The notes under the pieces: generated by a model
Database searches by the model: none
Seen by the model: only the letters and a program-made list of their open reading frames with translations
Told to the model about the DNA's origin: nothing
Program-made: the position numbers and the translations under genes
Sequence record: PP496441.1
Reading direction: 5' to 3' (one strand)
Length of the DNA stretch: 64,000 nt
Part shown: one piece after another, positions 26,710 to 46,876 of the stretch
Layout: each line of letters begins with the position of its first letter
Numbering within the stretch: the stretch's first letter is position 1

Positions 26710-26998
26710 TTATCTCGGCACCGATGAGCAGGCTCTTCAGCCATTCCTCACCACGCTCGTCTCTGTCTTCTACCCGAGTGTCTCCCATCATAATGAATGG
26801 GCAGTCGTTGTGCACCTCGAGCCGGTCGTAGGCTATACCCACGGCAGAATCGATGATATCCCAGCCAGTACAATTGCCGCCGATCTTAACTTGCATCTCG
26901 GCACGAAGCAATCCTGACGCGAAGGTAAGTATAACGGTCTGGAGGCAATTGCCCATAGTGTAGAACTTACCCATCTGTTCGTGATCATAGTTCAACAT
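26660..26998 (-). CDS. Hypothetical protein (start MLNYDH)
   Basis: TAATG coupling at 26996-27000. Confidence 0.65.
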   Translation of the reverse strand: MLNYDHEQMGKFYTMGNCLQTVILTFASGLLRAEMQVKIGGNCTGWDIIDSAVGIAYDRLEVHNDCPFIMMGDTRVEDRDERGEEWLKSLLIGAEIIAIESVSGGGNVNQGS

Positions 26999-27822
26999 TA
27001 GTCTGTCCTCTTGATGTTGCCGGGTAGGGTGTAGGACCACGGCTTGACGTAATCTGCCGGGCGGGTGTAGCCTATCAGGTCTTCACCTTCGTAAGGGCCA
27101 TACTTCCATGGGTCAGTAATCTCTGCGCGTTCAAACCCGATGGACTCGTATAACTTGATCGCACCTTCGTTGTCCGGATCCACGTTGAGATGGTGTGGCA
27201 GTCCTTGGGTCAGTTCCCAAGACAGCAGGAAGTCCAGCATGCCGCTGGCGACACCGCGACGGCGGTAGTCTGGATCAACACTGATCTCCTTGACGAAGCA
27301 CGCATCCACCTTCTCGCTGTCCTCGTCTTCCTTGAACATCACAACGTCCATCAGTCCGACGACCTTGTTGTGCGCGGTAACTGATACCCGTATCTCTTCC
27401 TGATCCGGAATATCCCCGCTCCAGCCATTCCATCGAGCCATGGTCACCGTGTACAGATGGTGTTGCCCGTCATGCTTGGGGCCGTGCACCTGATGCAGTG
27501 CCCGTGCATTCTTCAACTCCGTCTTGGGGCCGGGCTTGATGACCGGTAATTCCAGATGTTTGATTTCCTTTTCAAGCATGATACCAATCTCGGAGTCTTT
27601 CGCTTTCTTGTCTTTGATGGTGGCTCGGTACACTGTGTCTGTGTCCGTGTTGTAAACACCCACCTTATCCGTCATCACCGTAATAGACGGCACAGCGGAC
27701 CAGATGTACTCTTTGCAATGAGCTTTATCTGGGAATGCGAAGCCAACGGACTTGCCGTCTACAATGACCAGCCACGGGCAATGGCCGGGATGCGGAAACC
27801 GAAGGATCTTTTGTGTGGGCAT
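26998..27822 (-). CDS. GNAT acetyltransferase (C-terminal) fused to an unknown N-terminal domain
   Basis: ISVDPDYRRRGVASGML (acetyl-CoA R/QxxGxA motif) and NEGAIKLYESIGF. Confidence 0.85.
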   Translation of the reverse strand: MPTQKILRFPHPGHCPWLVIVDGKSVGFAFPDKAHCKEYIWSAVPSITVMTDKVGVYNTDTDTVYRATIKDKKAKDSEIGIMLEKEIKHLELPVIKPGPKTELKNARALHQVHGPKHDGQHHLYTVTMARWNGWSGDIPDQEEIRVSVTAHNKVVGLMDVVMFKEDEDSEKVDACFVKEISVDPDYRRRGVASGMLDFLLSWELTQGLPHHLNVDPDNEGAIKLYESIGFERAEITDPWKYGPYEGEDLIGYTRPADYVKPWSYTLPGNIKRTD

Positions 27823-33541: not shown

Positions 33542-35020
33542 ATGAAATCTGTAGCCGTTGACTACCAAAAGATAGCCAAGGAATGCCAGTGCACCGAGCT
33601 GCCTTCCAAGGTAAGAGTTACTCGTGCACGGGTCTATCCAAACTTGAGGACGTGCCTACTCTTCCTCAAGTACGATGCCAAAGGTGAACTGGTACAAGCC
33701 GAGATCACTGCGCCGTACGACACGTCCACCGAGCCAAAGGTGAGGGTGCTCAAGCACCCGGACAAGAAGTCCGACTTCCTTTCATTATACAGGGCGCTGA
33801 TCCGCCACCAGATCATACCCGAGTCTATTCCGAAGAAAGGTAACGGGATTGCACCAACGCTGGAGGTCATCGGCACACTGGTGAGCCTGCTGCCGGAACG
33901 GGATGTCGAAACCTTCCGTACGCTGACCCCGGCCATCCAGACTGGCAGCGTCATGTACGTCCCGCTGGTCACGTCCCGGCCAATGCCCATGGTGCAACAC
34001 TGGATACCTGTTGACCAGCATTCAGAGCTGGGCATGATCGAGCTAGTCGATACGGATAGCAAGCCTTTCCTTAATCAGTGGGTCAACAGGTTGAGCAACA
34101 CCGCCACTGGTTATGTGATCTACACCCCCGAAGGCTCACACGGTCAGGAACTAGCCTGCTTCCGGGTGCCCAATGTGCAAGGGGAGGAACTGTGTGTGGT
34201 CAAGAAGGTTGACTTCACCCTGACTGTTGCTCGCACGCTCAAGCCGGTACTGACTGTATCCACCAAGAGTACTCGGGCAGTGTCCCGCATTCCCCTACCC
34301 CACTATCTGATGCTACGCAATCACCACATCAAGGTGGGCACGGTTATTTCCCTGCGTCGTAACGACCGAGGTGGGTTGGTGTACCATGAGACGGTGGCCG
34401 AGGAAGGCATGACACCCCTCCCACTGTGCCCGCACTGCCACAGTGGGTCTGTGCTGCGAGGTAGTAGCAATGACGTGTACTGCAATAACGATTCATGCCG
34501 AGGCCTAGCCATTGTGCGACTTCGCTACATCTTGAACAACAAGCTGGACGTCAAGTACCTGAGCGACAATAAGGTAACGGCGCTGATCAATGACAAGCAG
34601 GACCTGTTCAGCTTGCTTAAGACCCCGACGCACCAGTTACGGCACAGACCTGGCTTTGGTGCACGTACCGTGGACGCACTGGAGGAGAAGCTTAACACTA
34701 TTGCCGGTCTTCCACTGCACACACTGGCCGAGATGTCCTGCGCTTTCTACAACGTGGGCGTGCCCCCACTGGATGAGATGGTGTTCAAGAAGATCTTTTC
34801 CGTTATGTCGCTTGACTACCTGAAAGCGCTGCCGTCTACCGGCAAGATGTACAGTCAGCTGCTCGACATCGAAGGTATCCGCAACAACCGCGCAGTGGCT
34901 TTCCTTGCTGGCTGGCCTGCATTTCAACAGTGGATGATAGACCTGAACGCTGCCCTACAGTCTCGCATCGCAATCTCCTCCACGGTAAATAACCCGAAAC
35001 AAATTCGAGGTGTGAAATGA
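33542..35020 (+). CDS. Degenerate LigA-like protein (OB fold, C4 zinc finger, HhH) lacking the KxDG catalytic motif
   Basis: RBS GGAGAA; VKKVDFTL...LKPVLTV and IKVGTVISLRR (OB); CPHCHS...YCNNDSC; PGFGARTV and LLDIEGI (HhH); YPNLRT at the expected EPKLDG position. Confidence 0.7.
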   Translation: MKSVAVDYQKIAKECQCTELPSKVRVTRARVYPNLRTCLLFLKYDAKGELVQAEITAPYDTSTEPKVRVLKHPDKKSDFLSLYRALIRHQIIPESIPKKGNGIAPTLEVIGTLVSLLPERDVETFRTLTPAIQTGSVMYVPLVTSRPMPMVQHWIPVDQHSELGMIELVDTDSKPFLNQWVNRLSNTATGYVIYTPEGSHGQELACFRVPNVQGEELCVVKKVDFTLTVARTLKPVLTVSTKSTRAVSRIPLPHYLMLRNHHIKVGTVISLRRNDRGGLVYHETVAEEGMTPLPLCPHCHSGSVLRGSSNDVYCNNDSCRGLAIVRLRYILNNKLDVKYLSDNKVTALINDKQDLFSLLKTPTHQLRHRPGFGARTVDALEEKLNTIAGLPLHTLAEMSCAFYNVGVPPLDEMVFKKIFSVMSLDYLKALPSTGKMYSQLLDIEGIRNNRAVAFLAGWPAFQQWMIDLNAALQSRIAISSTVNNPKQIRGVK

Positions 35021-35781
35021 ACAATCAAAACAGAACTCGTATCGCTGTGCTTGTCGGCGGCGGTCTGGACTCACATGCGTACATGGTATTGAAAGCCGAC
35101 CAGCCTCAGACAGACTTCATTCATGTGGACTACGGCCAGCGGGTTGCAGTAGCCGAGAGAAACGCCGTGTTGCAAATGGCTGAGAAGCTGGGCATTGCCC
35201 GCAGCCGGGTGTACACGCTGATCTGCAACAAGAAGAATCACATGCGCAAGGTCAATGACGGTGTGGGTGTGTTGTTTGGCACCGGCCCGGTCGAGATGGA
35301 CAATGCGTTTGTTAAGGGACGTAACCTGTTCCTGATTCAGAAGGCCATCGAGCTGGGCTACGGTCACGTGCACTTGACGCTGACCCAAGAGCGTGGCCGG
35401 ATGTTCCCCGATGCCGATCTGGCATTCGTCCAGCTGGTTGACAACCTGATGCACCGCAGTTATGACGTGAGGGTATCCGCCCCCTACATCATGGAAGACA
35501 AGCATCGGGTGATGTTCAAGGCGTATCGGCATTGCCCCGAGTTCCTCGATATGTCTTTCACGTGCTGGGTAGGTCCTTATGTGGAATGTGGCACGTGCCC
35601 GCACTGCGTCAAGAAGGAAAAGATTCGAGCCGAGATGATCGTTGAGAAGATTGAATACGATCTCAGCAAGGATGAACGTGAGGCGCAGTGGGAGCAAGTC
35701 AAGGCAGGCTACGGCGACGCGTTGAAGCCCGCTGAGACCATCAACATGAACATTCAGGTTGTTGACGGAGGACTGAAATGA
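35017..35781 (+). CDS. queC: QueC-like ATP pyrophosphatase (AANH), copy 1
   Basis: VLVGGGLDS (PP-loop variant), VDYGQR, VKGRNLFL, FPDA, SFTCW...CGTCPHC. Confidence 0.82.
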   Translation: MNNQNRTRIAVLVGGGLDSHAYMVLKADQPQTDFIHVDYGQRVAVAERNAVLQMAEKLGIARSRVYTLICNKKNHMRKVNDGVGVLFGTGPVEMDNAFVKGRNLFLIQKAIELGYGHVHLTLTQERGRMFPDADLAFVQLVDNLMHRSYDVRVSAPYIMEDKHRVMFKAYRHCPEFLDMSFTCWVGPYVECGTCPHCVKKEKIRAEMIVEKIEYDLSKDEREAQWEQVKAGYGDALKPAETINMNIQVVDGGLK

Positions 35782-36488
35782 ACAAGTTCTTAGGTTGGTT
35801 CAAGCGTCTGCTGGATAAGAAGCACAAGTCGATCACGATGACGTTGACCGACGCCGAAGGTAAGTTGGTCACCATCCACATACCGCAAGGTGCGGGTGTC
35901 GAATACACGCTCTCGAAGTCGGGCACCCACTTGAACGTCTCAGTTAAAGACGACGTCTTCATGTTGCGCACGAATGGCGCTGGAGGCGGTGGCAGTGGAA
36001 GTTCCAAGCCCGGTCTCAACGGTGGCCCCGGCCATACACCTATCCCCCGGTCCCCAAGCTTCACGGGCGCTGGTACGCCGAACTACGGTCACGCAGGCGA
36101 CCCGCCTGTTGGTGCTCAAGCTTCGTTCCCTATCGGCGCCCGAGCAACTGTTTCTGGTGGTGGGCGCGTTGGTGGCCTGTCAGGTGGAAGCGCAAACGGC
36201 ACAATGGCTGGTGGTGGAGATGGCTTCGTTCCCTCTCCAATCCGTAGCTCTGATCGAGCTTACCTGATTAGAGGTTTGTATTACGTCATCACGACGAAGA
36301 AGATAACGGGAGAGCAATACCCGATCCATGAGCTTCTGCATTGGGGTAAGAAGTCAATCGAACTCATGGGCAAGTTCTCCACCGTCCGAGACGCTATCGA
36401 CGAACTCAAATTGAAGACGGGTATCCCATTCGAAGACCTGACGGACTATCAGGTTGATTCCCTTCCCAAACGACTGTGCAAGCCTTGA
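35778..36488 (+). CDS. Hypothetical protein with a central Gly/Ser/Pro-rich low-complexity segment
   Basis: ATGA-coupled to QueC copy 1; GAGGGGSG...GGGDG tract. Confidence 0.7.
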   Translation: MNKFLGWFKRLLDKKHKSITMTLTDAEGKLVTIHIPQGAGVEYTLSKSGTHLNVSVKDDVFMLRTNGAGGGGSGSSKPGLNGGPGHTPIPRSPSFTGAGTPNYGHAGDPPVGAQASFPIGARATVSGGGRVGGLSGGSANGTMAGGGDGFVPSPIRSSDRAYLIRGLYYVITTKKITGEQYPIHELLHWGKKSIELMGKFSTVRDAIDELKLKTGIPFEDLTDYQVDSLPKRLCKP

Positions 36489-36492
36489 TCGG

Positions 36493-36500
36493 GTAAATGG
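36493..36500 (+). promoter_or_regulatory. GTAAATGG motif
   Basis: About 27 nt upstream of QueC copy 2. Confidence 0.55.
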
Positions 36501-36526
36501 CCCGTAACTAATCCGGAGACACCAGC

Positions 36527-37345
36527 ATGACCACTGCGCCCCCAAAGATTATCGTTGCATTCAGCGCCGGTACAGATTCAACTACAGCGGCCTACTACTA
36601 TCGCAAGCTCGGCTATCAGGTAACGCTGGCCGTGTTCGATGACGGCGCATGCAACGATCCACTTGACCCTCTGTACGATCCGAACAAGCCGAAGGACTTG
36701 ACCAACTTCTCGGATGAGTTCTACGATTACGTACGGATTCACCAAGAGCACACGGAAGGCCATCTTCAGTTCGACTTCGTGGAGATTCGTTATCCGCAAC
36801 TCGCATTGCTGGAAGCCAACAAGACAGCCAAGCCCGGTCGGGACAATGCAGCAGCAGCAGAGGCTGACGGCTTGGGCTTCTGGGTCGGCTTCAAGGGCCT
36901 GATGGCAATGTTGCTGATGAGCCACGGCGCCGCCAATGGTTACGAGGCAGTAGTCTTCGGCCACATGCCGTACAACAACCATTACGAAGATGAGCTGCCC
37001 CAGAACTTCGAGCTGCTGCGTCAGTACATGGTTACGGCCTATGGCAGCCGAGTGGAAATTCCTCAGATCTACCACCCGTTCTATCGACCTAATTTCGATA
37101 CCAAGGAAAAGGTTATTGAGCTGGCGCAGGCAATCGGCGTGCCCTTGCGAGATACCTATTCGTGTCGCCGAGGTGAAGTAGAAACCCGAGGTATCCTCCT
37201 GCCACTTCTGCGTGGCGGTAACTCCAACTACGTGAGCCCCACCTACCGTTGGAAGCATTGTGGTACGTGTGAGAACTGTGTCGAACGCAAGCGAGCCTTC
37301 GCGGCGCTGGGCATGAAAGATCCTGCCCCTTATATGGAACATTGA
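36527..37345 (+). CDS. queC: QueC-like ATP pyrophosphatase (AANH), copy 2
   Basis: VAFSAGTDS, TKEKVIELA...GVPLRDTYSCRRG, HCGTCENCVERKRAF...DPAPY. Confidence 0.82.
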   Translation: MTTAPPKIIVAFSAGTDSTTAAYYYRKLGYQVTLAVFDDGACNDPLDPLYDPNKPKDLTNFSDEFYDYVRIHQEHTEGHLQFDFVEIRYPQLALLEANKTAKPGRDNAAAAEADGLGFWVGFKGLMAMLLMSHGAANGYEAVVFGHMPYNNHYEDELPQNFELLRQYMVTAYGSRVEIPQIYHPFYRPNFDTKEKVIELAQAIGVPLRDTYSCRRGEVETRGILLPLLRGGNSNYVSPTYRWKHCGTCENCVERKRAFAALGMKDPAPYMEH

Positions 37346-37346
37346 T

Positions 37347-38363
37347 ATGGCCCTTTCAATCTGGCCGCTGACCGAAGGTGAACTCGGTCAGGGCCTCGTC
37401 AACGAACTGAATCGTACCAGCAAGGCGCTGGTGAACCGGAGTATGTGGTCTTTGCCATTGCTCCGGCGGTTGTTTTATCGGCGCACCGAGATTGGTGTCC
37501 CGGAGCTACTCCACGTCTGTACCAGCATTCATCGGGGCAAGACTTACTTCTGCCTGTTGGTGAACTTCCGAGACGTGGTGATGGGCAACCCCGAGCAATA
37601 CGGATGGGACCTAGCTGGCCGGTGGTTGTTCTACGATGTGGATCTGCTGGATACCCCGGAATTTAAACAGGTAAACGCGGCTATTCGTAAGGTGGCTACG
37701 GTCAACACGGTTACCTACGGTCAAGCATTCGTTCCGGATGAAGGTGGTATGGGGGAGGAGCACTGGATCAAGAAACTGAAAGGTAACTACCGCCCCCACA
37801 TCTTCGGCGAAAAGTCAAAACAGGTTATCGTCAGTCAGACCTGCGGACACGCGGCTACTCACGTGCTGACCGAGGCAGTGATGTCATTCGGTATCCAGCG
37901 CGCTGAGAGATTTCTCGCGGAAGGTCAGTCGGATGTCATGCCGGAGTTGTATGACCTACCCATGCAGCTAGCCGGTCTAGGCTCGATCCCCGGAACCCGG
38001 ATTGGCACCGTGTCGCTCACCTGCCGGGATACCCATGCGCTGATCGGTACCCTGTCGTTCTACGTTGTGGCGGGCTTGGGTCACAGTGATATCTTGTATA
38101 TGCACGAGATGCTGATTGATCCGGATCCGAAGTGGAAGCATCTATCGGTGGCCGTCAACTTGCACATTCAGGCAATCATGTATGTGCGCTATCTAAACAA
38201 CCGATCTGATCGGGCTTCGGACTTGGTTATCAACCTCGGATTCAACTTGGACGAGAAGTACAACACATACAAAGAGGTGTTCCGTCCGAACAAGTCCGAA
38301 ATGGAAATCTATACCGGCATGCACACCGAGCCAGGCGTCCCACTGTCCTGTTTCAAGGGGTAA
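37347..38363 (+). CDS. Divergent GNAT-fold protein, ATE1/Bpt/Fem-like (putative aminoacyl-tRNA transferase)
   Basis: C-terminal INLGFNLDEKYNTYKEVFRP resembles the ATE1/Bpt YLGY...YKxxFRP end. Confidence 0.45.
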   Translation: MALSIWPLTEGELGQGLVNELNRTSKALVNRSMWSLPLLRRLFYRRTEIGVPELLHVCTSIHRGKTYFCLLVNFRDVVMGNPEQYGWDLAGRWLFYDVDLLDTPEFKQVNAAIRKVATVNTVTYGQAFVPDEGGMGEEHWIKKLKGNYRPHIFGEKSKQVIVSQTCGHAATHVLTEAVMSFGIQRAERFLAEGQSDVMPELYDLPMQLAGLGSIPGTRIGTVSLTCRDTHALIGTLSFYVVAGLGHSDILYMHEMLIDPDPKWKHLSVAVNLHIQAIMYVRYLNNRSDRASDLVINLGFNLDEKYNTYKEVFRPNKSEMEIYTGMHTEPGVPLSCFKG

Positions 38364-38366
38364 GAC

Positions 38367-39368
38367 ATGTACACTCCGTATTCCCAAAACAGTCTGATGC
38401 AATCGATCCCGCTGGATGACCAAGGTACATTCGCCCATCCACCGTACACGATGGAAGGAGAGTTCACCGACGTGTGGACGAATCCAAACCTATATGGATT
38501 CGTCAGCCTGTTGAACGGCCAGAGCAATAGCCGGGCATATCGAGACTGGATGACCACCCACAATCTTCCAGCCCTGTTCCTCGGTCCGCACCATGAAGAC
38601 AACTTCTGGTTTGAATTCAGCACTGGTCTCGATTCCAACTGCACGCTGGATTACAACGAGATCAACGTCCAAGGCAACCTGCAGGACTTCCTTGGGAGAT
38701 TGACGTCATCTCGCCGTCGCTCCGTGCTCAAGGCAAAGGAAACGGATACAATGATCCACAAGGCAGGCTCGGTAGCCAACTTCAACCTGTATCATCCGGT
38801 GGAGGGTAGGCTGTATAGTCTGACCGTGATTCACGAACGCCGGGTGATGAAAGATATTTCCGAGTTTATCGAATCGAAACTCTGGAGTATGAAGCATACG
38901 CCTACTGACCTCACGTACGGTGCATTCACCACTCTGATGGACTACATCCGGTTGAAGCAGCGAGATGACACGCCGCTGGGCCACCGGTTGCGCAACGTAC
39001 AGCTCTTGGTCATTCGAGATGAACGCTCCGGGTTTATCGTGTCAGTTCATCTGGTGGCGATCAACACGTTGAAAGATGATTCCATGAACCCCACCAAGAC
39101 GTACATGCACTCCTTCGCACGCATCACTGTTCTCCCTGCACGTATCGCCTTACTTGCGTTGATCAAGGCGGTTCAAGAGTTAAACGTCACCAGTCAGTAC
39201 GCGTCCCGTGCACTGGCGAAGATCGACTATCTTGATGTGAGCAACGTGGTGCTGTCCGAGCGAGAGCAGTACAAGTCGGACTTCTTAACCGGCAAATGCC
39301 AAGTGCGTGCGTGGGCGTCCCCGGCGCTGCTGGAACGGCAGTTACCTTTCGTTACGCCGATCCCGTAA
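38367..39368 (+). CDS. Divergent Fem/Acetyltransf_6-like dupli-GNAT protein
   Basis: DFLGRLTSSRRRSVLKA (Fem-type basic helix); C-terminal YLDV...YKSDF. Confidence 0.45.
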   Translation: MYTPYSQNSLMQSIPLDDQGTFAHPPYTMEGEFTDVWTNPNLYGFVSLLNGQSNSRAYRDWMTTHNLPALFLGPHHEDNFWFEFSTGLDSNCTLDYNEINVQGNLQDFLGRLTSSRRRSVLKAKETDTMIHKAGSVANFNLYHPVEGRLYSLTVIHERRVMKDISEFIESKLWSMKHTPTDLTYGAFTTLMDYIRLKQRDDTPLGHRLRNVQLLVIRDERSGFIVSVHLVAINTLKDDSMNPTKTYMHSFARITVLPARIALLALIKAVQELNVTSQYASRALAKIDYLDVSNVVLSEREQYKSDFLTGKCQVRAWASPALLERQLPFVTPIP

Positions 39369-39372
39369 CTCT

Positions 39373-39380
39373 GTAAATGA
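39373..39380 (+). promoter_or_regulatory. GTAAATGA motif
   Basis: Intergenic, upstream of 39423. Confidence 0.55.
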
Positions 39381-39422
39381 TGGGAACAGCCCCACCATCA
39401 CTTCATCTCTAGGGTAGTTCCC

Positions 39423-40475
39423 ATGCAAGACTTCGATAAGATCATGATCGACAGTAGTTTGACATCAAATCTGGTGTACGCAGGCTTGGGTAGCTTGATC
39501 ACACCCCGTGCACTTGACCTGCTGATCGAACATCAGGCTGCACTGGAAAACGTATACGCCAATCTGGAAACAGCGTATCAGATTACCCCACCCTTCCCCT
39601 GTGAAGCTGCATTCAATTCCCCTGACAAAGATCCTGTGCTGGTCGCCGACTATCTGAATGCTACTCCCGCCATCCGTTGCGGAGAGCTGGCTGGATTCGA
39701 GGCAAAGCCCGGCAGTTACTACCACGCCCCCGCTGCTGGCATCTGCCCGGAACATCGCATCGACGTACGAGGTATGTCTTTGCGTGAGTTCGATCACTAT
39801 CTGGTTGAGCGGGCGGAGGTGTCACGGATCACTACCAATCTGGTGGCCGACAAGTTCCGCTGTGAGACTCATGTGTACAAAGTGGATGAAGATCATATCC
39901 TGATCCATGACGCCGAACGAGTTGGGATCAGCCAGACGGACTTCCGCCGCATGTGGGCGCAGACCCGCCGCCGGGAAATCGCTGATAATTATCTGCAGCA
40001 CATGCCCATCGAAGACTCCGCCAAGGATGATCAGGTGGTGCGACTGATCAACGAAGACGTAGCACGGGTGTTCGCCCAGAACGTCGACTACGACCGCATG
40101 ATTCCGCCCGAGCTGATCTTCGATGGTCAGGGCAAGCCGGTGCTGACCGTGCTGAAAGATTGCAACGCCAAGGTATTGGGCATTGGTGTGTACGTCATCT
40201 ACAAGTCAGCTGACCCAGAGCATGACAGCGAACTGCACTGGCGTGGCGCTTTCTACGATCACGAAGATCCGCGTACTGCATCCATGGGCATTGAACACGC
40301 TCTGGTTGCCAGCGCACTGCACACAGCGTACGCCTGCAACGCAGTTCTCTATCTGACCAAGGCACCGAAGTCCGTGTGTGACGCATGGAAGACGGAAGTG
40401 CACCAAGGTTACGGGCTGGTCCGTAATGCGATGCCGGAACTGTCTGACACCCCTTACATTCTGGCTATCCAGTAA
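39423..40475 (+). CDS. Divergent ATE1/Bpt-like GNAT-fold protein
   Basis: AFYDHEDPRTASMGIEHAL...VLYL resembles ATE1/Bpt FYDP...SLG...L...YLG. Confidence 0.45.
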   Translation: MQDFDKIMIDSSLTSNLVYAGLGSLITPRALDLLIEHQAALENVYANLETAYQITPPFPCEAAFNSPDKDPVLVADYLNATPAIRCGELAGFEAKPGSYYHAPAAGICPEHRIDVRGMSLREFDHYLVERAEVSRITTNLVADKFRCETHVYKVDEDHILIHDAERVGISQTDFRRMWAQTRRREIADNYLQHMPIEDSAKDDQVVRLINEDVARVFAQNVDYDRMIPPELIFDGQGKPVLTVLKDCNAKVLGIGVYVIYKSADPEHDSELHWRGAFYDHEDPRTASMGIEHALVASALHTAYACNAVLYLTKAPKSVCDAWKTEVHQGYGLVRNAMPELSDTPYILAIQ

Positions 40476-40479
40476 ATAG
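40472..40479 (+). promoter_or_regulatory. GTAAATAG motif
   Basis: Overlaps the stop codon; about 30 nt upstream of the ATP-grasp gene. Confidence 0.5.
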
Positions 40480-40508
40480 CCGGTAACTCCATCCATTGAG
40501 GTACTTCC

Positions 40509-42593
40509 ATGAAATCCGTGAACCCCATCTTCAAGCACGTTCCCCAGTTCGACTGGCCTGTCATCCCTCGTGCACAGTGGGAAGAGATCATCAAGGGAAA
40601 AGAGCATGTGATGTTCGACTCCTTCTCGCAGCTCGCTCAAGTGTTGGCTATCCCGGTGAGCAGTTACCAGTTCTACTTCGAAGATGGGTCCACGTTGTTC
40701 GCCGGTCCCGAAGCAACCTTCACCGCCGCGCCGTACCCGCTGTATCAGGACCTTGAATTCGTCCTGACCCCTGACGAGACGTTGGTGCCGGGTCTTGCAC
40801 TGGATACCAAACCGTGGGGCCTGTACACCGACGAATGGGTGGACAACTACGAAGGTGCGGACAAGGAAGACATCGGCAACAAGACCGGGTTCGAATTCAT
40901 TCCGCTGTCGGACGCCTTGAAACTGGTGGTCCTCAACACGGAGACCATGCAGCTCCAGTACACTGCCATCGAGAGCTTCACGTACGACGGCGTGACTTAC
41001 GTATACCTGCTGGCCGATGGCGTGTGCTGGGTACTGGCGGGCAAGTCCGGTGGTCTGGTTGCCAGCGAGCATGACAAAGGTGCTGCGTTCATCATGGTGT
41101 CCCATCCCGAGTTCGCCGGGTGCAGCGTAGACAACATGTATCCAAGTGAGTTCGGTGAAGCGGAAGCGACGTTCTACGTTCAAGACGAGGAACACAATTA
41201 CCTGGACGCGGCTAACCGCATCTTCGAGGAAGCCAAGGACGTAGGCGCTGGCACGTTCCTGACCATTGAGACCGGTGATGGATTGCCGACCGCGCTGGCG
41301 TACAACCTGCGGTACAGTGATGTGGCCCACGTTAACCTGCCGATGCACAACATCCACCAGTTCACTTCTCTGCACGTACGACTGGGTGAGACTCCTAACT
41401 TTTCCGAGGCCCCGGAAGCGTGCCGCATGAAAGAGGTGATGGAGTATCTGGCGGACCCTGAGTCCCCGGTAGATCATTACTGGTCGGCCATCATGGTACT
41501 GGAGAAGAACTTCCCCGGTTTCGCCGACGCCCTGAAAGACTCCAGTGTCCCGACCCGTGACATCGTGCACTCCAAACAGGCGTTCAGCTTGGAGATCGAT
41601 CGCCAGTTCGGCAAGGAAGTGGCAAGCAAGATCGGCCTGAACACTGGCGTATTCGCCCAAGTGAAAGACCGTGATGAGTGGCTGACCCGTCAAGACGATT
41701 TTCCTACCGACAAGGTGGCCGTCAAGTACAACACCAAACACTTCATCGGCATCTTCGACAAGGACGAGGTATCGAATTCCATCAACATGTGGCTGGCCGG
41801 TCAACCCGGAGAGTCGCTGATGATCGAAGAGTACTTCGGTGAGGGCAATCAGGAATTCAACCTGTGCTATGTGATCAACGAAGAGTTTGTGCAGCCGACG
41901 CTGTTCCTGTGCGAAGTCAACAAGATCCTCGGTAATGACACCGGCGGCAAAGGTGGCAACACGCTGGCCTGCCATGATGCTCGTATTAACAAGTACCCTG
42001 AGTTCTTCGAGCCGGTAAATAATGCGCTTGCTAACCTGCATGAGCACGTGGAAGGTGTGAAGGGCTGGGTTGACCTGAGCTTCATGGTCCGCGACGGCAT
42101 CCCTTACTTCACAGAGTGGTGCATTCGCATCGGCTGCTCCAACAACGCCACCATCGTGCGCCAGATGGAGACCCCTCTCGACGTTCTTTTGACTAACGTG
42201 GTTAACAAGGTGCATACCGAGCTGTCTTGGAAGCACTCCATGTCTGTTAGCGTGGACATCTACAGCATGCCGCTGTCCGCAGGCAATGATGCCAACATGC
42301 AGTTCACCGACTCGCTGACCACTCCGGTAGAGATGGTGTCCCCACTCAATCTGGAATTGGCAGCGGAGAGTTTCTTCGACCCGATTGATTCGGCCTGGAA
42401 CGCGGTGTACGACGGCTACATTGTCGAGGCGTACAACCGATATGGCACCGTCTCGGGGTATTCCACCAACTGGAACTTCGCCTGCAATGCGGCGTACAAT
42501 CACTTGAAAGATCAGTCGGTGTTGTACGGGGCATACCGCGAAGCGCCTGCCCACCACGACCCACTGACTCTGTTCCCTTTCCTCAAGGCGTAA
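40509..42593 (+). CDS. ATP-grasp amide ligase, PurD (GAR synthetase)-like, with an N-terminal extension
   Basis: VAVK, MIEEYFGEGNQEF, CEVNKILGNDTGGKGG (cf. PurD DHKR...GDTGPNTGGMG), GIPYFTEWCIRIG (cf. ExNxRFG). Confidence 0.72.
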   Translation: MKSVNPIFKHVPQFDWPVIPRAQWEEIIKGKEHVMFDSFSQLAQVLAIPVSSYQFYFEDGSTLFAGPEATFTAAPYPLYQDLEFVLTPDETLVPGLALDTKPWGLYTDEWVDNYEGADKEDIGNKTGFEFIPLSDALKLVVLNTETMQLQYTAIESFTYDGVTYVYLLADGVCWVLAGKSGGLVASEHDKGAAFIMVSHPEFAGCSVDNMYPSEFGEAEATFYVQDEEHNYLDAANRIFEEAKDVGAGTFLTIETGDGLPTALAYNLRYSDVAHVNLPMHNIHQFTSLHVRLGETPNFSEAPEACRMKEVMEYLADPESPVDHYWSAIMVLEKNFPGFADALKDSSVPTRDIVHSKQAFSLEIDRQFGKEVASKIGLNTGVFAQVKDRDEWLTRQDDFPTDKVAVKYNTKHFIGIFDKDEVSNSINMWLAGQPGESLMIEEYFGEGNQEFNLCYVINEEFVQPTLFLCEVNKILGNDTGGKGGNTLACHDARINKYPEFFEPVNNALANLHEHVEGVKGWVDLSFMVRDGIPYFTEWCIRIGCSNNATIVRQMETPLDVLLTNVVNKVHTELSWKHSMSVSVDIYSMPLSAGNDANMQFTDSLTTPVEMVSPLNLELAAESFFDPIDSAWNAVYDGYIVEAYNRYGTVSGYSTNWNFACNAAYNHLKDQSVLYGAYREAPAHHDPLTLFPFLKA

Positions 42594-42596
42594 TCC

Positions 42597-43760
42597 ATGA
42601 GCACTCCATTCCAAGAGTTCACCCTAGAAGGGTGGATTCGCTACATGAGAGATGAAAGCATCATCTGGCGCGCGTACGCTGATGGTCATCCGGATAAGGT
42701 CGAGTTCAGCCCGGAGTGGCGTGACGAGATGTATCGGTTGATGGTGCAGTTCAAAGATCTGCTGCCGATGTCGTTTTCCAATCCGGTGTACGGCTTCACT
42801 GAAGGTTGGCTGGAAGGGCTCGGACTCCAGCCCTTTTATGGCGATGATCCGTTCAATCCGATGGTGCAACCGCTTAGCCACCCTCTGGTGCATGTGGGGC
42901 TTCCGTTTACTCTGAGCGAGCTGACGGCGGGCGTATGGGACTGTCAGTCCCTGAGCGCTCACCTGGAGCGTCCGCTGCTGGTCGATACATTCGAACCGAT
43001 CCCAGTGCCATCTATTAGCCTGGACGCTTACAAAGCCGTCCTGACCGTACGGGACCGGGAAGAGATCGTGATGAGTGCGGGAACCCCGGTGAACTACTTC
43101 CTCTGGTTGAATAGTCCGATCACCGAACTCAAAGACGACTTCGACGTTTATCTGGCCAGCCTGACCAAGAAGCGCCGCTACAAAGTGAAGCAGGCACTGG
43201 CGACAGTGGGCACCGAAGAGAACCCGGCTATCAGCGTCAGTACTGGATCTCGTTTCGGCGAAGGGTTGTTGTCCGATCAGGTGAACAGCATCCTCGCGAC
43301 TTTCGAAGATCCGGTGGACATAGAGTGCATGCTTCTTCAGCTGCTGTTCGGGGTGGCAACCTGCAATACCCATCCGCATCTTGTCGATCTGGTTTGTGCA
43401 GACCAGCAGTTGGGGATCTTCATCAAGCGCAACGGCCACACGATGAATTTCCTCTACAACCGTGACCCGGACAACCGCGCTGACTCAGGCATCAACCTGC
43501 TGACCCAGTACGTGCGCCATCTGCACATGAACCGCCCGGAAGGTGTGATGTACGTGGACCCGACATGTCGATATCGGCCTGACGAGGACAGTATGAACAC
43601 CTACAAGCGGGTGATCACCAACGAGAACCGGTATCACCCAATGCCGTTCGTCTCGGCTGATCCTGCGCACATCGAAGGTGTTATTACCCCGGCGTTCATT
43701 GCAGGTCATTGGCAGATGTCGGCGTCCAATGGCCCGGCCAATCCTGAGATGATGGAGTAA
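42597..43760 (+). CDS. Fem/Acetyltransf_6-like dupli-GNAT protein
   Basis: DVYLASLTKKRRYKVKQAL; C-terminal SGINLL...YVD...YKR. Confidence 0.55.
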   Translation: MSTPFQEFTLEGWIRYMRDESIIWRAYADGHPDKVEFSPEWRDEMYRLMVQFKDLLPMSFSNPVYGFTEGWLEGLGLQPFYGDDPFNPMVQPLSHPLVHVGLPFTLSELTAGVWDCQSLSAHLERPLLVDTFEPIPVPSISLDAYKAVLTVRDREEIVMSAGTPVNYFLWLNSPITELKDDFDVYLASLTKKRRYKVKQALATVGTEENPAISVSTGSRFGEGLLSDQVNSILATFEDPVDIECMLLQLLFGVATCNTHPHLVDLVCADQQLGIFIKRNGHTMNFLYNRDPDNRADSGINLLTQYVRHLHMNRPEGVMYVDPTCRYRPDEDSMNTYKRVITNENRYHPMPFVSADPAHIEGVITPAFIAGHWQMSASNGPANPEMME

Positions 43761-43762
43761 CC

Positions 43763-44710
43763 ATGGCAAAGCACAAGGTCAAAAGGTTGGAAATCAACCA
43801 CATCTACGACTTCTACCCGTTGTATCAGGTGATGTACGGGCGTGGCATGGAGACCAAAGCGTTCGAGGTCTCCAAGTTCGCCAAGATGGTGCTGGACTTC
43901 GAAGCATCAACCAGTACTCGCCGGAAGTGGGACGTGCTGGAACCTTTCAGCGGTATCAGCGAGCATGAACACTTCTTCGCTGCTACTGGCCTGAACATCG
44001 AGCACTACACCGGCATGGACATCGTGGTTCCAGATGGGGCCAAAAACGTCATTCAAGGTGACATCATCACCGACACCCTTCCGTTTCACGTCAACGCGGT
44101 GTTCGCCTTCTACTACAGCTTGCAGAATGTACGGGACGCCAAGACTGGCATGCACACGCGGGAAAAGCTGGTGGAGTTCTTCGACAACATCCTCGGCCAT
44201 CTGCAAGTCAATGCGAACAAGAGCCGTATGCCCGCAGTGTTCGCTTTCCACCTTGACCAGCCTGAAGACCCTAATTACTATCTGACGTCCCGTGCCGACG
44301 TTGGAGGTGAACAGTCATGGACCGCACCCGCGTGTGGTCTGCTGGGGCAGTGGGTCAAGTGCAAACCGACCGACACTCTGGAAGTGAAGTGCAATCTGGA
44401 CACCTGGTACAACCGTGTGCAGTGCACCGCGTACGATCAGGCGGAGGATATCCAGATTCTGGTAAATGGGCGAGTAGTGGCGACCGTTGAGATCGAACAG
44501 CCGTTCACCCATCGGGTCTGGACCGAGCATGAGGTGATCGACATCCTGCGGGGTCTGGACTACAATCTGCACTTCCACATGTACAACGGCACCATCTCCA
44601 ATTACGACTTCTTGATGACCCGTTTGGAAGACAAGCCCGTTCCCGGCGATGAAGAGGCTAATACTAATCAGATGACAACTGATATGCTGGTTGTCGTTAA
44701 TCCGAGGTAA
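43763..44710 (+). CDS. Class I SAM-dependent methyltransferase, copy 1
   Basis: DVLEPFSG (motif I variant), MDI, IQGDI, VNAVFAFYYSL. Confidence 0.65.
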   Translation: MAKHKVKRLEINHIYDFYPLYQVMYGRGMETKAFEVSKFAKMVLDFEASTSTRRKWDVLEPFSGISEHEHFFAATGLNIEHYTGMDIVVPDGAKNVIQGDIITDTLPFHVNAVFAFYYSLQNVRDAKTGMHTREKLVEFFDNILGHLQVNANKSRMPAVFAFHLDQPEDPNYYLTSRADVGGEQSWTAPACGLLGQWVKCKPTDTLEVKCNLDTWYNRVQCTAYDQAEDIQILVNGRVVATVEIEQPFTHRVWTEHEVIDILRGLDYNLHFHMYNGTISNYDFLMTRLEDKPVPGDEEANTNQMTTDMLVVVNPR

Positions 44711-44712
44711 GA

Positions 44713-45630
44713 ATGGCTAAGCCCAAGATCCCTACACGAACCATCCCCACGTTGTACCAAGACTGGGGGTTGTACAGCGCCATCTGCGAACTGCCGCAGG
44801 AGACGATGCTGATGATGTCGCGCTTCGTGGCAGACCGGACCATCGAACATGCCGAGCGCCATGACCTGGAAAGTGTGGCGATCATGGAGCCCTTTAGCGG
44901 GCCGATCCCGTATTACGAGCCAGACATCCGAAGCTTCCTGACTCGCGCCCGTGTTGACCTGGATACGTACGATCATGTCGAGTACCTTGATCACGGTGGA
45001 TTGTCGGAAGACAACAATATCATCATCGGTGACATCACCACCATCGACCTGAAACAGAAATACGACGTCATCTACGGCAGTTACGGCAGCTTGGCCTGCC
45101 TGCTGCTGGATCACACGCACAACAAAGCGTATGAGAAGTCACACGCAGCTCTGGTCAACATTCGCGAGCACCTGAAACCCAACGGCATCTTCGTCCTGAA
45201 CGCCAACGGATCCAGCGAAAGCCTGCTGAATAACCTGTTGAACTCCGATGAGCCGGATCAAGAGATTCGCGTCCGTCCGGGATCGCAGTTGGGCAAGGCG
45301 TTCCGAATCAAACCAGACAGTAACGCGCTGCTTCGTTTCTCCTACAACGTGGAGTACGACCGACGCACCACCTGCACCATGTGCCATTACAGCGATATGG
45401 TGCTGTCTGTAAATGGGGTTGACATCCAGCGCTGGGAGGTGGAATCCCCGACGTATCTTGCGCCGCTGGATGAACCCGAACTAATTCGAATGGCAGGTAT
45501 GGCTGGTTTCAATCTGGACAACACCGAGTTCTACGGATTGGACACCACCGGTTATCCTGCCTTCTTCAAAATGGATACGGTCTGCGACGGGTCATGGTCA
45601 CCCGCCGAGTTCGTAGTCTTTCGCACCTAA
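44713..45630 (+). CDS. Class I SAM-dependent methyltransferase, copy 2
   Basis: IMEPFSG, IGDITTIDLKQKYDVIYGSYGSL, EHLKPNGIFVL. Confidence 0.8.
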   Translation: MAKPKIPTRTIPTLYQDWGLYSAICELPQETMLMMSRFVADRTIEHAERHDLESVAIMEPFSGPIPYYEPDIRSFLTRARVDLDTYDHVEYLDHGGLSEDNNIIIGDITTIDLKQKYDVIYGSYGSLACLLLDHTHNKAYEKSHAALVNIREHLKPNGIFVLNANGSSESLLNNLLNSDEPDQEIRVRPGSQLGKAFRIKPDSNALLRFSYNVEYDRRTTCTMCHYSDMVLSVNGVDIQRWEVESPTYLAPLDEPELIRMAGMAGFNLDNTEFYGLDTTGYPAFFKMDTVCDGSWSPAEFVVFRT

Positions 45631-45640
45631 CGAGGTTCCT

Positions 45641-46876
45641 ATGAGCGTTATCATCCCCACCGTAGCGATGGAGAGTGGTCAGCCAGACATGATCATTCAA
45701 GGCTGTTCCACGGGTCGCCTCTCTATGGCCGAGCCTAACGAGAGCGCCAAACCCAAGTCTTCCAAGAAGCTGTACGAACGTGAAGACCTGATGGCGTACG
45801 ACAGCGAGTCGGAGCACTGGCAGAAGCAGTTGGCCCGCCGCTACGCGCATCACGGTGAGATGGTCGGCGTGTTGAACAACGTCGAGGTGGTGCCGGAAGC
45901 CACCTATCAGAACTTCGACATGAAGATCACCCCGTACACCGCGCAGTTGATGGACCAGAACGACCCCAACTGCCCGATCCGTTTGCAGTACATGCCGACC
46001 AACAAAGAGCTGGAGTCTATTCAGCGCGAAGAGACCATGCACAACGAGCTGGGCGAGGAAGAGGACACCATCCCCGGTACCTCGGTCGTGCACCGCTACC
46101 CGCGTCGCGTCTTGTTCCTGACCACTACCCAATGCGCCAGCTTCTGCCGTTACTGCACCCGTGCACGCATCGTCTCCCACGGCGGCGAAGCGGCGATCAC
46201 CAAGAAGCACCTTGACGCCAGCATCGACTACATCGCCGGGAACAAGGACATCGAAGACGTGCTGCTGTCCGGCGGTGACCCGTTCATCCTCCCAGACAAC
46301 AAGCTCGACGAGATCCTCGGTCGTATCCGCGCCGAAGCACCTCACGTTCGCTTCCTGCGTATCGGTAGCCGACTGCCGGTACAGATGCCGACCCGTATCA
46401 CTCCAGAGCTGTGCGAGATTCTGGAACGCCACAACGTCAACATGGTCAACATCCATGTGAACCATCCGAAAGAAGTAACCCCTCTGCTGGCCTCCCGGAT
46501 GAAGATGTTGCGCAAAGCTGGCGTGATGATCGGCAATCAGGCCGTCATGCTGAAAGGCGTGAACGACTCCATCGAGGTGATGACCGAGCTGTGCTTGCGT
46601 ATGGTCGAGATGGGCGTGCGTCCGTACTATGTCTACTCCAACGATCCGGTGGCGCAGGCTGCGCACTTCACCGTGTCGCTGAAAGAGATGCTGAACATCA
46701 ACGAGGGTATGCGCGGCTTCCTGTCTGGCCCGGCTATGCCAACCTTCGTGGTAGACGGTGTGGGTGGCTTGGGCAAGATGCCGGTGCAGAAAGAGTACGT
46801 CAGCTTCGATAAGAACGGCGGTATCTTCGCCCAGAACTTCGAAGGGAAAACGGCCCGCATGCCCCATCTGGAATAA
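45641..46876 (+). CDS. kamA: Lysine 2,3-aminomutase (KamA family radical SAM/PLP enzyme)
   Basis: HRYPRRVL, CASFCRYCTR (CxxxCxxC), LLSGGDP, RIGSR, HVNHP, NQAVMLKGVND, RPYYVYSND, FVVDGVGGLGKMP (PLP Lys). Confidence 0.93.
   Translation: MSVIIPTVAMESGQPDMIIQGCSTGRLSMAEPNESAKPKSSKKLYEREDLMAYDSESEHWQKQLARRYAHHGEMVGVLNNVEVVPEATYQNFDMKITPYTAQLMDQNDPNCPIRLQYMPTNKELESIQREETMHNELGEEEDTIPGTSVVHRYPRRVLFLTTTQCASFCRYCTRARIVSHGGEAAITKKHLDASIDYIAGNKDIEDVLLSGGDPFILPDNKLDEILGRIRAEAPHVRFLRIGSRLPVQMPTRITPELCEILERHNVNMVNIHVNHPKEVTPLLASRMKMLRKAGVMIGNQAVMLKGVNDSIEVMTELCLRMVEMGVRPYYVYSNDPVAQAAHFTVSLKEMLNINEGMRGFLSGPAMPTFVVDGVGGLGKMPVQKEYVSFDKNGGIFAQNFEGKTARMPHLE

Follow-up and report, generated by a model that had tools for sequence, protein, structure and literature searches.

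A predicted aminoacyl-tRNA-dependent double-GNAT transferase in a conserved jumbo-phage operon with 7-deazaguanine enzymes

Introduction

DNA hypermodifications guard phage genomes against restriction and CRISPR and supply new DNA-chemistry enzymes. To our knowledge, no DNA modification was known to use charged tRNA before the work on Mom of phage Mu. Mom is a phage enzyme of the GNAT fold that, with host Gly-tRNAGly as its donor, hypermodifies a base of double-stranded DNA; it is a single enzyme and needs no other pathway genes (PMC13219725). Here we analyze four genes, termed A, B, C and D, and the operon around them in the genome of vB_PpuM-Pori-4 (hereafter Pori-4), a 202.6-kb myovirus (jumbo phage) of Pseudomonas putida that falls into genus cluster G3 of the CEPEST collection (PMC7616413). 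The window, a stretch of 64,000 nucleotides, was taken from sequence record PP496441.1; window positions, used below unless stated otherwise, equal record positions minus 124,000.

Phage systems for 7-deazaguanine modification of DNA comprise FolE, QueD, QueE, QueC and DpdA, with Gat-QueC, ArcS2 and DpdL/M/N. Fem-like, ATP-grasp and KamA genes and the methyltransferase-like genes called M1 below, all of them present in the operon studied here, are not among the pathway proteins named in the relevant passages of PMC10516641.

A precedent in which several paralogues act one after another is found in the Fem enzymes (FemX, FemA and FemB). Members of their class combine two GNAT domains with a positively charged helix on domain 2 that binds tRNA, and they have a catalytic lysine, examples of which are Lys305 of FemX and the Phe328-Lys329 pair of DhpH-C (PMC12945691). 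Sbb17 and Sba18, of the Orf11 type, transfer an amino acid from aminoacyl-tRNA to the amine of a non-peptidoglycan acceptor (PMC12945691).

In a preliminary description of the window, made from the letters alone, A, B, C and D were held to be four divergent paralogous double-GNAT proteins acting, in sequence or as a hetero-oligomer, as tRNA-dependent peptide ligases, and such enzymes were called unusual in a phage. The latter statement is too strong, since Mom, itself a GNAT, works on DNA with Gly-tRNA (PMC13219725) and phage proteins annotated as FemAB exist. The most informative feature of the locus, its setting in an operon with 7-deazaguanine, ATP-grasp and KamA enzymes, was missed.

Results

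Gene D is predicted to encode a double-GNAT transferase

Gene D (42597-43760, + strand; 387 amino acids) encodes a predicted double-GNAT transferase of the Fem/Orf11/aminoacyl-phosphatidylglycerol-synthase type. A D profile built from five sequences and searched with HMMER against 1.84 billion representatives returned 84 relatives, 60 of them below 1e-10 and most of them 300-370 amino acids long. When 75 relatives were scanned singly, 9 matched PF13480 (Acetyltransf_6; best E 3.8e-8) and 6 matched PF04339 (FemAB_like), so that, as judged from sequence, D belongs to these two families transitively only, via its relatives. Residues P174, L189, R194, K337, R338, N342 and P365 are conserved in at least 90% of the 75 family sequences, and the motifs YL.SL..KRRYK and DPTC...YKR..N are family-wide.

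The AlphaFold2 model of D, computed with the family alignment, attained a predicted local distance difference test score (pLDDT) of 87.2 and a predicted template-modelling score (pTM) of 0.87. In this model, residues 213-349 follow the strand/helix order of a GNAT domain, a basic helix (residues 191-202, KKRRYKVKQAL) stands at the start of domain 2, and Y336-K337 lies within helix 332-340. The Foldseek comparison of this model with the PDB returned double-GNAT enzymes, with alignments spanning 310-395 columns at a probability of ~1.0. The top matches (E 2.7e-6 to 1e-3, probability ~1.0) were all aminoacyl-tRNA-dependent enzymes. Ranked first were Sbb17 and Sba18 of streptothricin-analogue biosynthesis (PDB 9wqw, 9wqx and 9wqy; E 2.7e-6 to 7.6e-5, ~315 aligned columns), whose PDB entries are named 'aminoacyl-tRNA-dependent peptide synthase', followed by alanyl-phosphatidylglycerol synthase (A-PGS), Weissella FemX, MprF, lysyl-phosphatidylglycerol synthase (L-PGS) and FemA. 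ATE1 appeared further down as a weak partial match (E about 1e-2). All of the nearest solved relatives pass an aminoacyl group from aminoacyl-tRNA to an acceptor that is an amine or a hydroxyl.

The resemblances have their bounds. Sbb17 and Sba18 share the double-GNAT fold with D at 12-15% identity and a TM-score of 0.37-0.49, but are bacterial antibiotic-pathway enzymes, not phage proteins, with no connection to QueC or other 7-deazaguanine genes. A-PGS, L-PGS and the C-terminal domain of MprF (DUF2156) are double-GNAT, aminoacyl-tRNA-dependent enzymes matched by D at E 9e-5 to 1e-2; unlike D, which has no membrane domain, they are membrane-linked and modify lipids. The structural matches include FemX and FemA, and the Fem enzymes are like D in kind in that GNAT domain 2 begins with a basic helix and an aromatic-lysine pair lies near the C-terminus; however, A, B, C and D lie below the Pfam thresholds, and a peptidoglycan precursor cannot be the acceptor here. 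By analogy, the basic helix of D (with R194) and K337 would correspond in kind to the tRNA-binding helix and the catalytic lysine of the class. The two-domain GNAT fold with the substrate site between the domains can be assigned confidently, from the model, for D only. The model thus supports placing D in the aminoacyl-tRNA-dependent structural class, an assignment more secure than the identity of any acceptor.

D lies in a 12-gene operon with 7-deazaguanine enzymes

Because D sits in a conserved operon together with 7-deazaguanine enzymes, an undescribed amino-acid decoration of phage DNA is suggested. Our reading, to which we give a probability of roughly 45%, is that the operon equips a 7-deazaguanine-derived base, which is destined for or already in phage DNA, with a side chain made of an amino acid or a short peptide.

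The operon (33542-46876) comprises 12 genes, all on the + strand, spaced from a 4-base overlap to a 54-base gap and located between helicase and topoisomerase genes. Two of them encode QueC-like PP-loop ATPases: Q1 (35017-35781; Pfam QueC E 6.9e-19, PHROG 1550), which has a C-terminal cysteine cluster, and Q2 (36527-37345; Pfam QueC E 2.8e-12). Outside the window, Pori-4 also encodes GTP cyclohydrolase I (FolE, 3.8e-39) and a QueE-like radical SAM protein (4.5e-41), which rules out that the QueC-like genes stand alone. The QueE-like and FolE genes lie next to the DNA polymerase gene, with three unassigned open reading frames (ORFs) between them (L013:12723-16403; record 194422-198102). Thus, in common with the described phage 7-deazaguanine systems, Pori-4 has FolE, a QueE-like protein and two QueC-like proteins; it differs from them in having no detected DpdA or QueD. 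No tRNA genes were found in the Pori-4 genome. Phage-supplied tRNAs are thereby ruled out, and the aminoacyl donors would have to be derived from the host.

Downstream of the QueC-like genes lies G (40509-42593). Over the C-terminal half, its product is a PurD-like ATP-grasp amide ligase (residues 354-585 match NCBIfam purD at E 2.4e-7, and there is a weak match to Pfam GARS_A); the N-terminal ~350 residues are without assignment. The last gene, K (45641-46876), encodes a KamA-family radical SAM amino-acid 2,3-aminomutase, with TIGR00238 matched above the cutoff (7.7e-82) and the lysine, glutamate and arginine 2,3-aminomutase models at 4e-93 to 3e-87. Between D and K lie two methyltransferase-like paralogues (BLASTP 1.35e-6), M1 (43763-44710), which is a conserved partner of D, and M2 (44713-45630), for which matches to Methyltransf_31 and Methyltransf_12 (E 0.04-0.1) and to daptide_MTase were weak.

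The first gene of the operon, Pori4_00188 in GenBank (33542-35020), encodes a ligase-derived protein with the OB fold, zinc finger and helix-hairpin-helix of LigA. It matches the NCBIfam LigA model in part (E 1.6e-6), and in the PDB profile search the match (E 6.6e-10) is confined to residues ~320-500 of LigA, the adenylation domain not being matched; the N-terminal ~180 residues are without assignment. It is presumably a DNA-binding component. A complete NAD-dependent ligase is annotated elsewhere in Pori-4 (record 123142-125121). Between Q1 and Q2, gene X (35778-36488) encodes a glycine-rich protein of 236 amino acids that had no family match and is kept in the sister phages at 72% identity, with a ratio of non-synonymous to synonymous substitution rates (dN/dS) of 0.18.

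The module recurs in Vibrio phages and metagenomic contigs

A syntenic operon is present in the Vibrio phages GR11A and GR7B, where it is likewise flanked by helicase and topoisomerase II genes. It is headed by a homologue of Pori4_00188 and further contains a DUF5591 gene, two QueC genes, a gene for an unassigned 351-amino-acid protein, D, G, KamA (matching K in GR11A at E 1.1e-119) and a small GNAT gene; X was not seen in this cluster. DUF5591 is ArcS2, which has been shown to produce dG+ in DNA in the case of Vibrio phage nt-1 (PMC10516641). The family was shown by scan for the GR11A gene (L002:6224-7186), and in GR7B a gene (L006:6233-7240) occupies the matching position. Pori-4 has no DUF5591 gene, and the Pori-4 and Vibrio lineages may therefore make different end products.

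The core of the module was also found in other large phage contigs, from metagenomes and metagenome-assembled genomes (MAGs), denoted here by L numbers. These carry QueC, QueC, a 281-residue protein with a weak ATE_C match, D, ATP-grasp and M1 (L009, with a Q1 orthologue at E 1.2e-21); Gat-QueC, sugar-type enzymes, D and ATP-grasp (L010); a QueC-A fusion, G, M1 and D (L014); ATP-grasp, D and M1 (L015 and L019); or QueC followed by D (L018). As in the described 7-deazaguanine systems (PMC10516641), syntenic clusters carry ArcS2 or Gat-QueC. The ATP-grasp gene adjoins the D homologue, or is one gene away, in every contig with visible neighbours, and M1 orthologues adjoin D homologues in L003, L009, L014, L015, L019 and L020. 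In L014:2-1480 (Logan contig SRR13837215_66984), a single protein has a QueC-like domain of the Q2 type at residues 1-190 and an A-like C-terminal part of ~290 residues; the two fused parts correspond to neighbouring genes in Pori-4 (36527-37345 and 37347-38363). The fusion therefore ties A functionally to a QueC-like enzyme. A metagenomic locus, L017 (L017:2-2064), has two D-type genes in tandem.

The distant syntenic clusters hold one or two transferase-like genes, not four, and are devoid of B and C. Pattern scans found no loci in IMG/VR or in GTDB genomes, and a metagenome scan gave three; all sightings of the close D subfamily were on phage or phage-like contigs.

A is a probable relative of D, and B and C are orphans

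In agreement with the preliminary description, A (37347-38363; 338 amino acids), B (38367-39368; 333 amino acids), C (39423-40475; 350 amino acids) and D are ORFs on the + strand; they coincide with the GenBank coding sequences Pori4_00192, 193, 194 and 196, each annotated 'hypothetical protein'. The same genes occur in eight sister phages at 87-98% DNA identity, and tblastn of A, B, C and D against the phage database gave matches limited to nine sister phages, with two Vibrio phages in addition for D. Codon-level comparison with the sister phages Peetri and Aura showed purifying selection, with dN/dS of 0.05-0.26 across the four genes (0.10-0.26 for A, 0.10 for B and 0.05-0.12 for C), and we therefore take them as real protein-coding genes. 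The upper value for A comes from the comparison with Aura. A has an identity of only 65-69% in the sister phages SKa-4, Lauda, Illi-2 and Aura, against 94-98% there for the flanking B and C, which looks like allele replacement or faster evolution of A alone. An open frame of 802 codons runs antisense to G on the minus strand (40206-42614), and similar long antisense frames lie over Q1, Q2 and D; none of them is in the GenBank annotation. We rejected these minus-strand ORFs as genes and regard them as by-products of GC-rich coding sequence, because it is the + strand genes that agree with GenBank and are under purifying selection.

Paralogy of the four proteins, as claimed in the preliminary description, was not demonstrated, since BLASTP finds no pairwise similarity among them and the profile matches to D are weak or none. 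That they are recent duplicates is ruled out by the same BLASTP result and by the lack of B and C in distant syntenic clusters. Direct searches of Pfam, PHROGs, NCBIfam and PDB sequences with A, B, C and D gave no match, the Pfam scan returning nothing at E up to 1 and no gathering threshold being reached, and profile searches of PDB sequences with D, A and M1 yielded none that was significant. Profiles were then compared all-against-all with hhalign, with eight unrelated operon proteins as controls (56 control comparisons), of which the best unrelated pair reached P 0.031.

A matched the D family over ~155 colinear columns, from the basic helix to the YK motif, with P 0.035 in the calibrated run and 0.0013 with the tool's own settings (probability 19%). 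Two distant relatives of A were recovered: the C-terminal 290 residues of the L014 QueC fusion protein (phmmer 3.5e-5) and, in L003, a fragment that precedes the ATP-grasp gene and has a weak PF13480 match (E 0.11). In the five-sequence alignment of A and its distant relatives (A7), residues L297, G298, N300, Y308 and K309 are invariant. Because of these relatives, invariant residues and the weak Acetyltransf_6 match, A is, on sequence grounds, probably a member of the same superfamily as D, that is, a probable divergent Acetyltransf_6/Fem-like GNAT transferase.

For B and C, the word-indexed search of 5.8 billion proteins found homologues in the sister phages only. The D family matched B with P 0.002-0.004 (0.0036 in the calibrated run) over 28-29 columns, all in the basic helix (residues 99-127 of B, with the basic string SSRRRSVLKA); the relation of B to the D family is therefore marginal in sequence. 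Against C, the D family gave P 0.3-0.56, and no profile similarity of C to D or A was found. It is accordingly quite possible, at somewhat less than even odds and independently of what the operon makes, that B, C or both do not have the GNAT fold and are lineage-specific inserts between the conserved A and G, their likeness in motifs being due to chance. Their absence outside the sister phages and from the distant syntenic clusters fits such an origin, as do the confinement of the B match to 28 residues, the lack of a significant profile match for C and the chance frequency of aromatic-lysine dipeptides, which number 1-4 per protein. Conversely, the helix match of B to D is about tenfold better than the best of the 56 controls. 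C has a strand-strand-helix-strand-helix order around W322-K323, but in an AlphaFold model from a three-sequence alignment that failed (pLDDT 32) and whose secondary structure we did not use as evidence, and its BLASTP match to the C-terminus of the Vibrio-phage protein GR51 is non-significant (E 0.35).

The motifs on which the preliminary description relied can now be placed. Each of the strings that it quotes was recovered: B has DFLGRLTSSRRRSVLKA, D has DVYLASLTKKRRYKVKQA, C has FYDHEDPRTASMG...VLYL and A has NLGF...YKEVFRP. The first two had been read as a Fem basic helix shared by B and D, which stands as far as the 28 matching residues go (P 0.0036). The other two had been taken to recall ATE1/Bpt, a resemblance that Pfam does not support, neither A nor C having an ATE_C match. 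Such matches occur only in D-like proteins of other loci, below the cutoff: L009:9159-10004 (E 0.007) and L017:2-1003 (E 2.1e-4), the latter being the upstream gene of the L017 tandem, which gave the best ATE_C match in this analysis and falls in the D family by hhalign (P 8e-8). The (Y/W)K pair is indeed found 25-50 residues from the C-terminus in all four proteins (A Y308-K309, B Y302-K303, C W322-K323 and D Y336-K337); taken by itself it carries little weight, because of the chance frequency given above. The acetyl-CoA motif R/QxxGxA, which the ordinary GNAT encoded at 26998-27822 carries as RRRGVA and which had been said to be missing from all four, is lacking in B, C and D, whereas A has two loose R/QxxGxA/G matches, QTCGHA at 164 and QLAGLG at 207, outside the expected place. 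The double-GNAT fold, claimed for all four, is supported by a confident model for D only. As to tRNA-dependent ligase activity, the fold, relatives and motifs of D speak for it; it is plausible for A, hinted at for B, and C as a Fem-like protein finds no support. That the four act in turn or as a hetero-oligomer is conjecture.

Discussion

In the pathway that we propose, the QueC-like enzymes would process 7-carboxy-7-deazaguanine (7-carboxy or 7-cyano group), KamA would supply a beta-amino acid, and the ATP-grasp ligase G would make one amide bond. D, probably A and perhaps also B and C would each take an amino acid from host aminoacyl-tRNA and join it to a free amine of the growing appendage, so that up to four Fem-like enzymes may serve the Pori-4 lineage and one or two the distant clusters. 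M1 and M2 would methylate the product, and the ligase-derived DNA-binding protein would bring the chemistry to DNA. That DNA is the target is indicated by this protein and by the location of the operon among genes of replication. Mom is, by analogy, the functional precedent for a charged-tRNA donor in phage DNA hypermodification; it differs in targeting N6 of adenine and in having no deazaguanine, ATP-grasp or KamA partners.

Several points weigh against this pathway. Annotation, Pfam and PHROGs revealed no QueD and no DpdA/TGT-type transglycosylase in Pori-4, which leaves the entry of the deazaguanine into DNA unexplained. D itself is below every Pfam threshold, its Foldseek TM-scores against solved structures are moderate (0.35-0.49), and tandem GNATs that use acetyl-CoA also match it, with weaker E-values. 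No relation of B or C to D can be demonstrated. What the acceptor is, which amino acids are used and in what order the steps run are conjecture, and the pathway as a whole is inferred from genes and a predicted structure.

A tRNA-dependent operon could also yield something other than a DNA base, such as a free small molecule of the peptidyl-deazapurine type, or a modified host tRNA or protein. KamA in the company of an ATP-grasp ligase and a tRNA-dependent transferase is reminiscent of pathways to peptidyl nucleosides, the closest solved relatives, Sbb17 and Sba18, act on a small-molecule antibiotic intermediate, and the missing DpdA would fit as well. We consider such a product unlikely, given that a LigA-derived DNA-binding protein heads the operon and helicase and topoisomerase genes flank it, that the Vibrio-phage operon holds ArcS2, which acts on DNA in phage nt-1 (PMC10516641), and that the close D subfamily was seen on phage or phage-like contigs alone, with none in GTDB genomes by pattern scan. 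Least probable is that D, and any of A, B and C that share its fold, are tandem-GNAT acyltransferases that N-acylate a pathway intermediate from acetyl- or acyl-CoA, for even though VipF (E 2e-3 to 2e-2), the clavulanic-acid enzyme 2wpw and the Bacillus anthracis acetyltransferase 3n7z are in the Foldseek list of D and most Acetyltransf_6 members are without tested function, the nine best structural matches of known function are aminoacyl-tRNA users, and D has no Q/RxxGxG/A loop and keeps the conserved basic helix and aromatic-lysine pair typical of the tRNA-dependent class (PMC12945691).

Each enzyme type of the operon is already known, as is tRNA-dependent DNA hypermodification by a GNAT, in the form of Mom. 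The gene combination was not found in a full-text search of the literature, and a text search of the main 7-deazaguanine phage paper returned no instance of the terms 'ATP-grasp' and 'aminomutase' (PMC10516641). A broader proposal, which we regard as doubtful, is that large phages of Pseudomonas and Vibrio and their uncultured relatives possess an assembly line for a beta-amino-acid or peptide chain on the 7-deazaguanine of genomic DNA, composed of QueC-like enzymes, a PurD-like ATP-grasp ligase, KamA and one to four Fem-like transferases drawing on host aminoacyl-tRNA; such a 'peptidyl-deazaguanine' would be a kind of DNA hypermodification not yet described.

Our reading of the operon as decorating a 7-deazaguanine-derived base predicts an unknown nucleoside in the DNA of the phage, whose host, P. 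putida KT2440, is a safe laboratory strain. With a standard phage DNA kit the yield was very low for some phages, and another column did better for the G3 jumbo phages (PMC7616413); this could be unrelated or could be a sign of unusual DNA chemistry. If the reading is true, the use of charged tRNA in DNA modification would extend from one enzyme acting on adenine to multi-step peptide building on guanine analogues.

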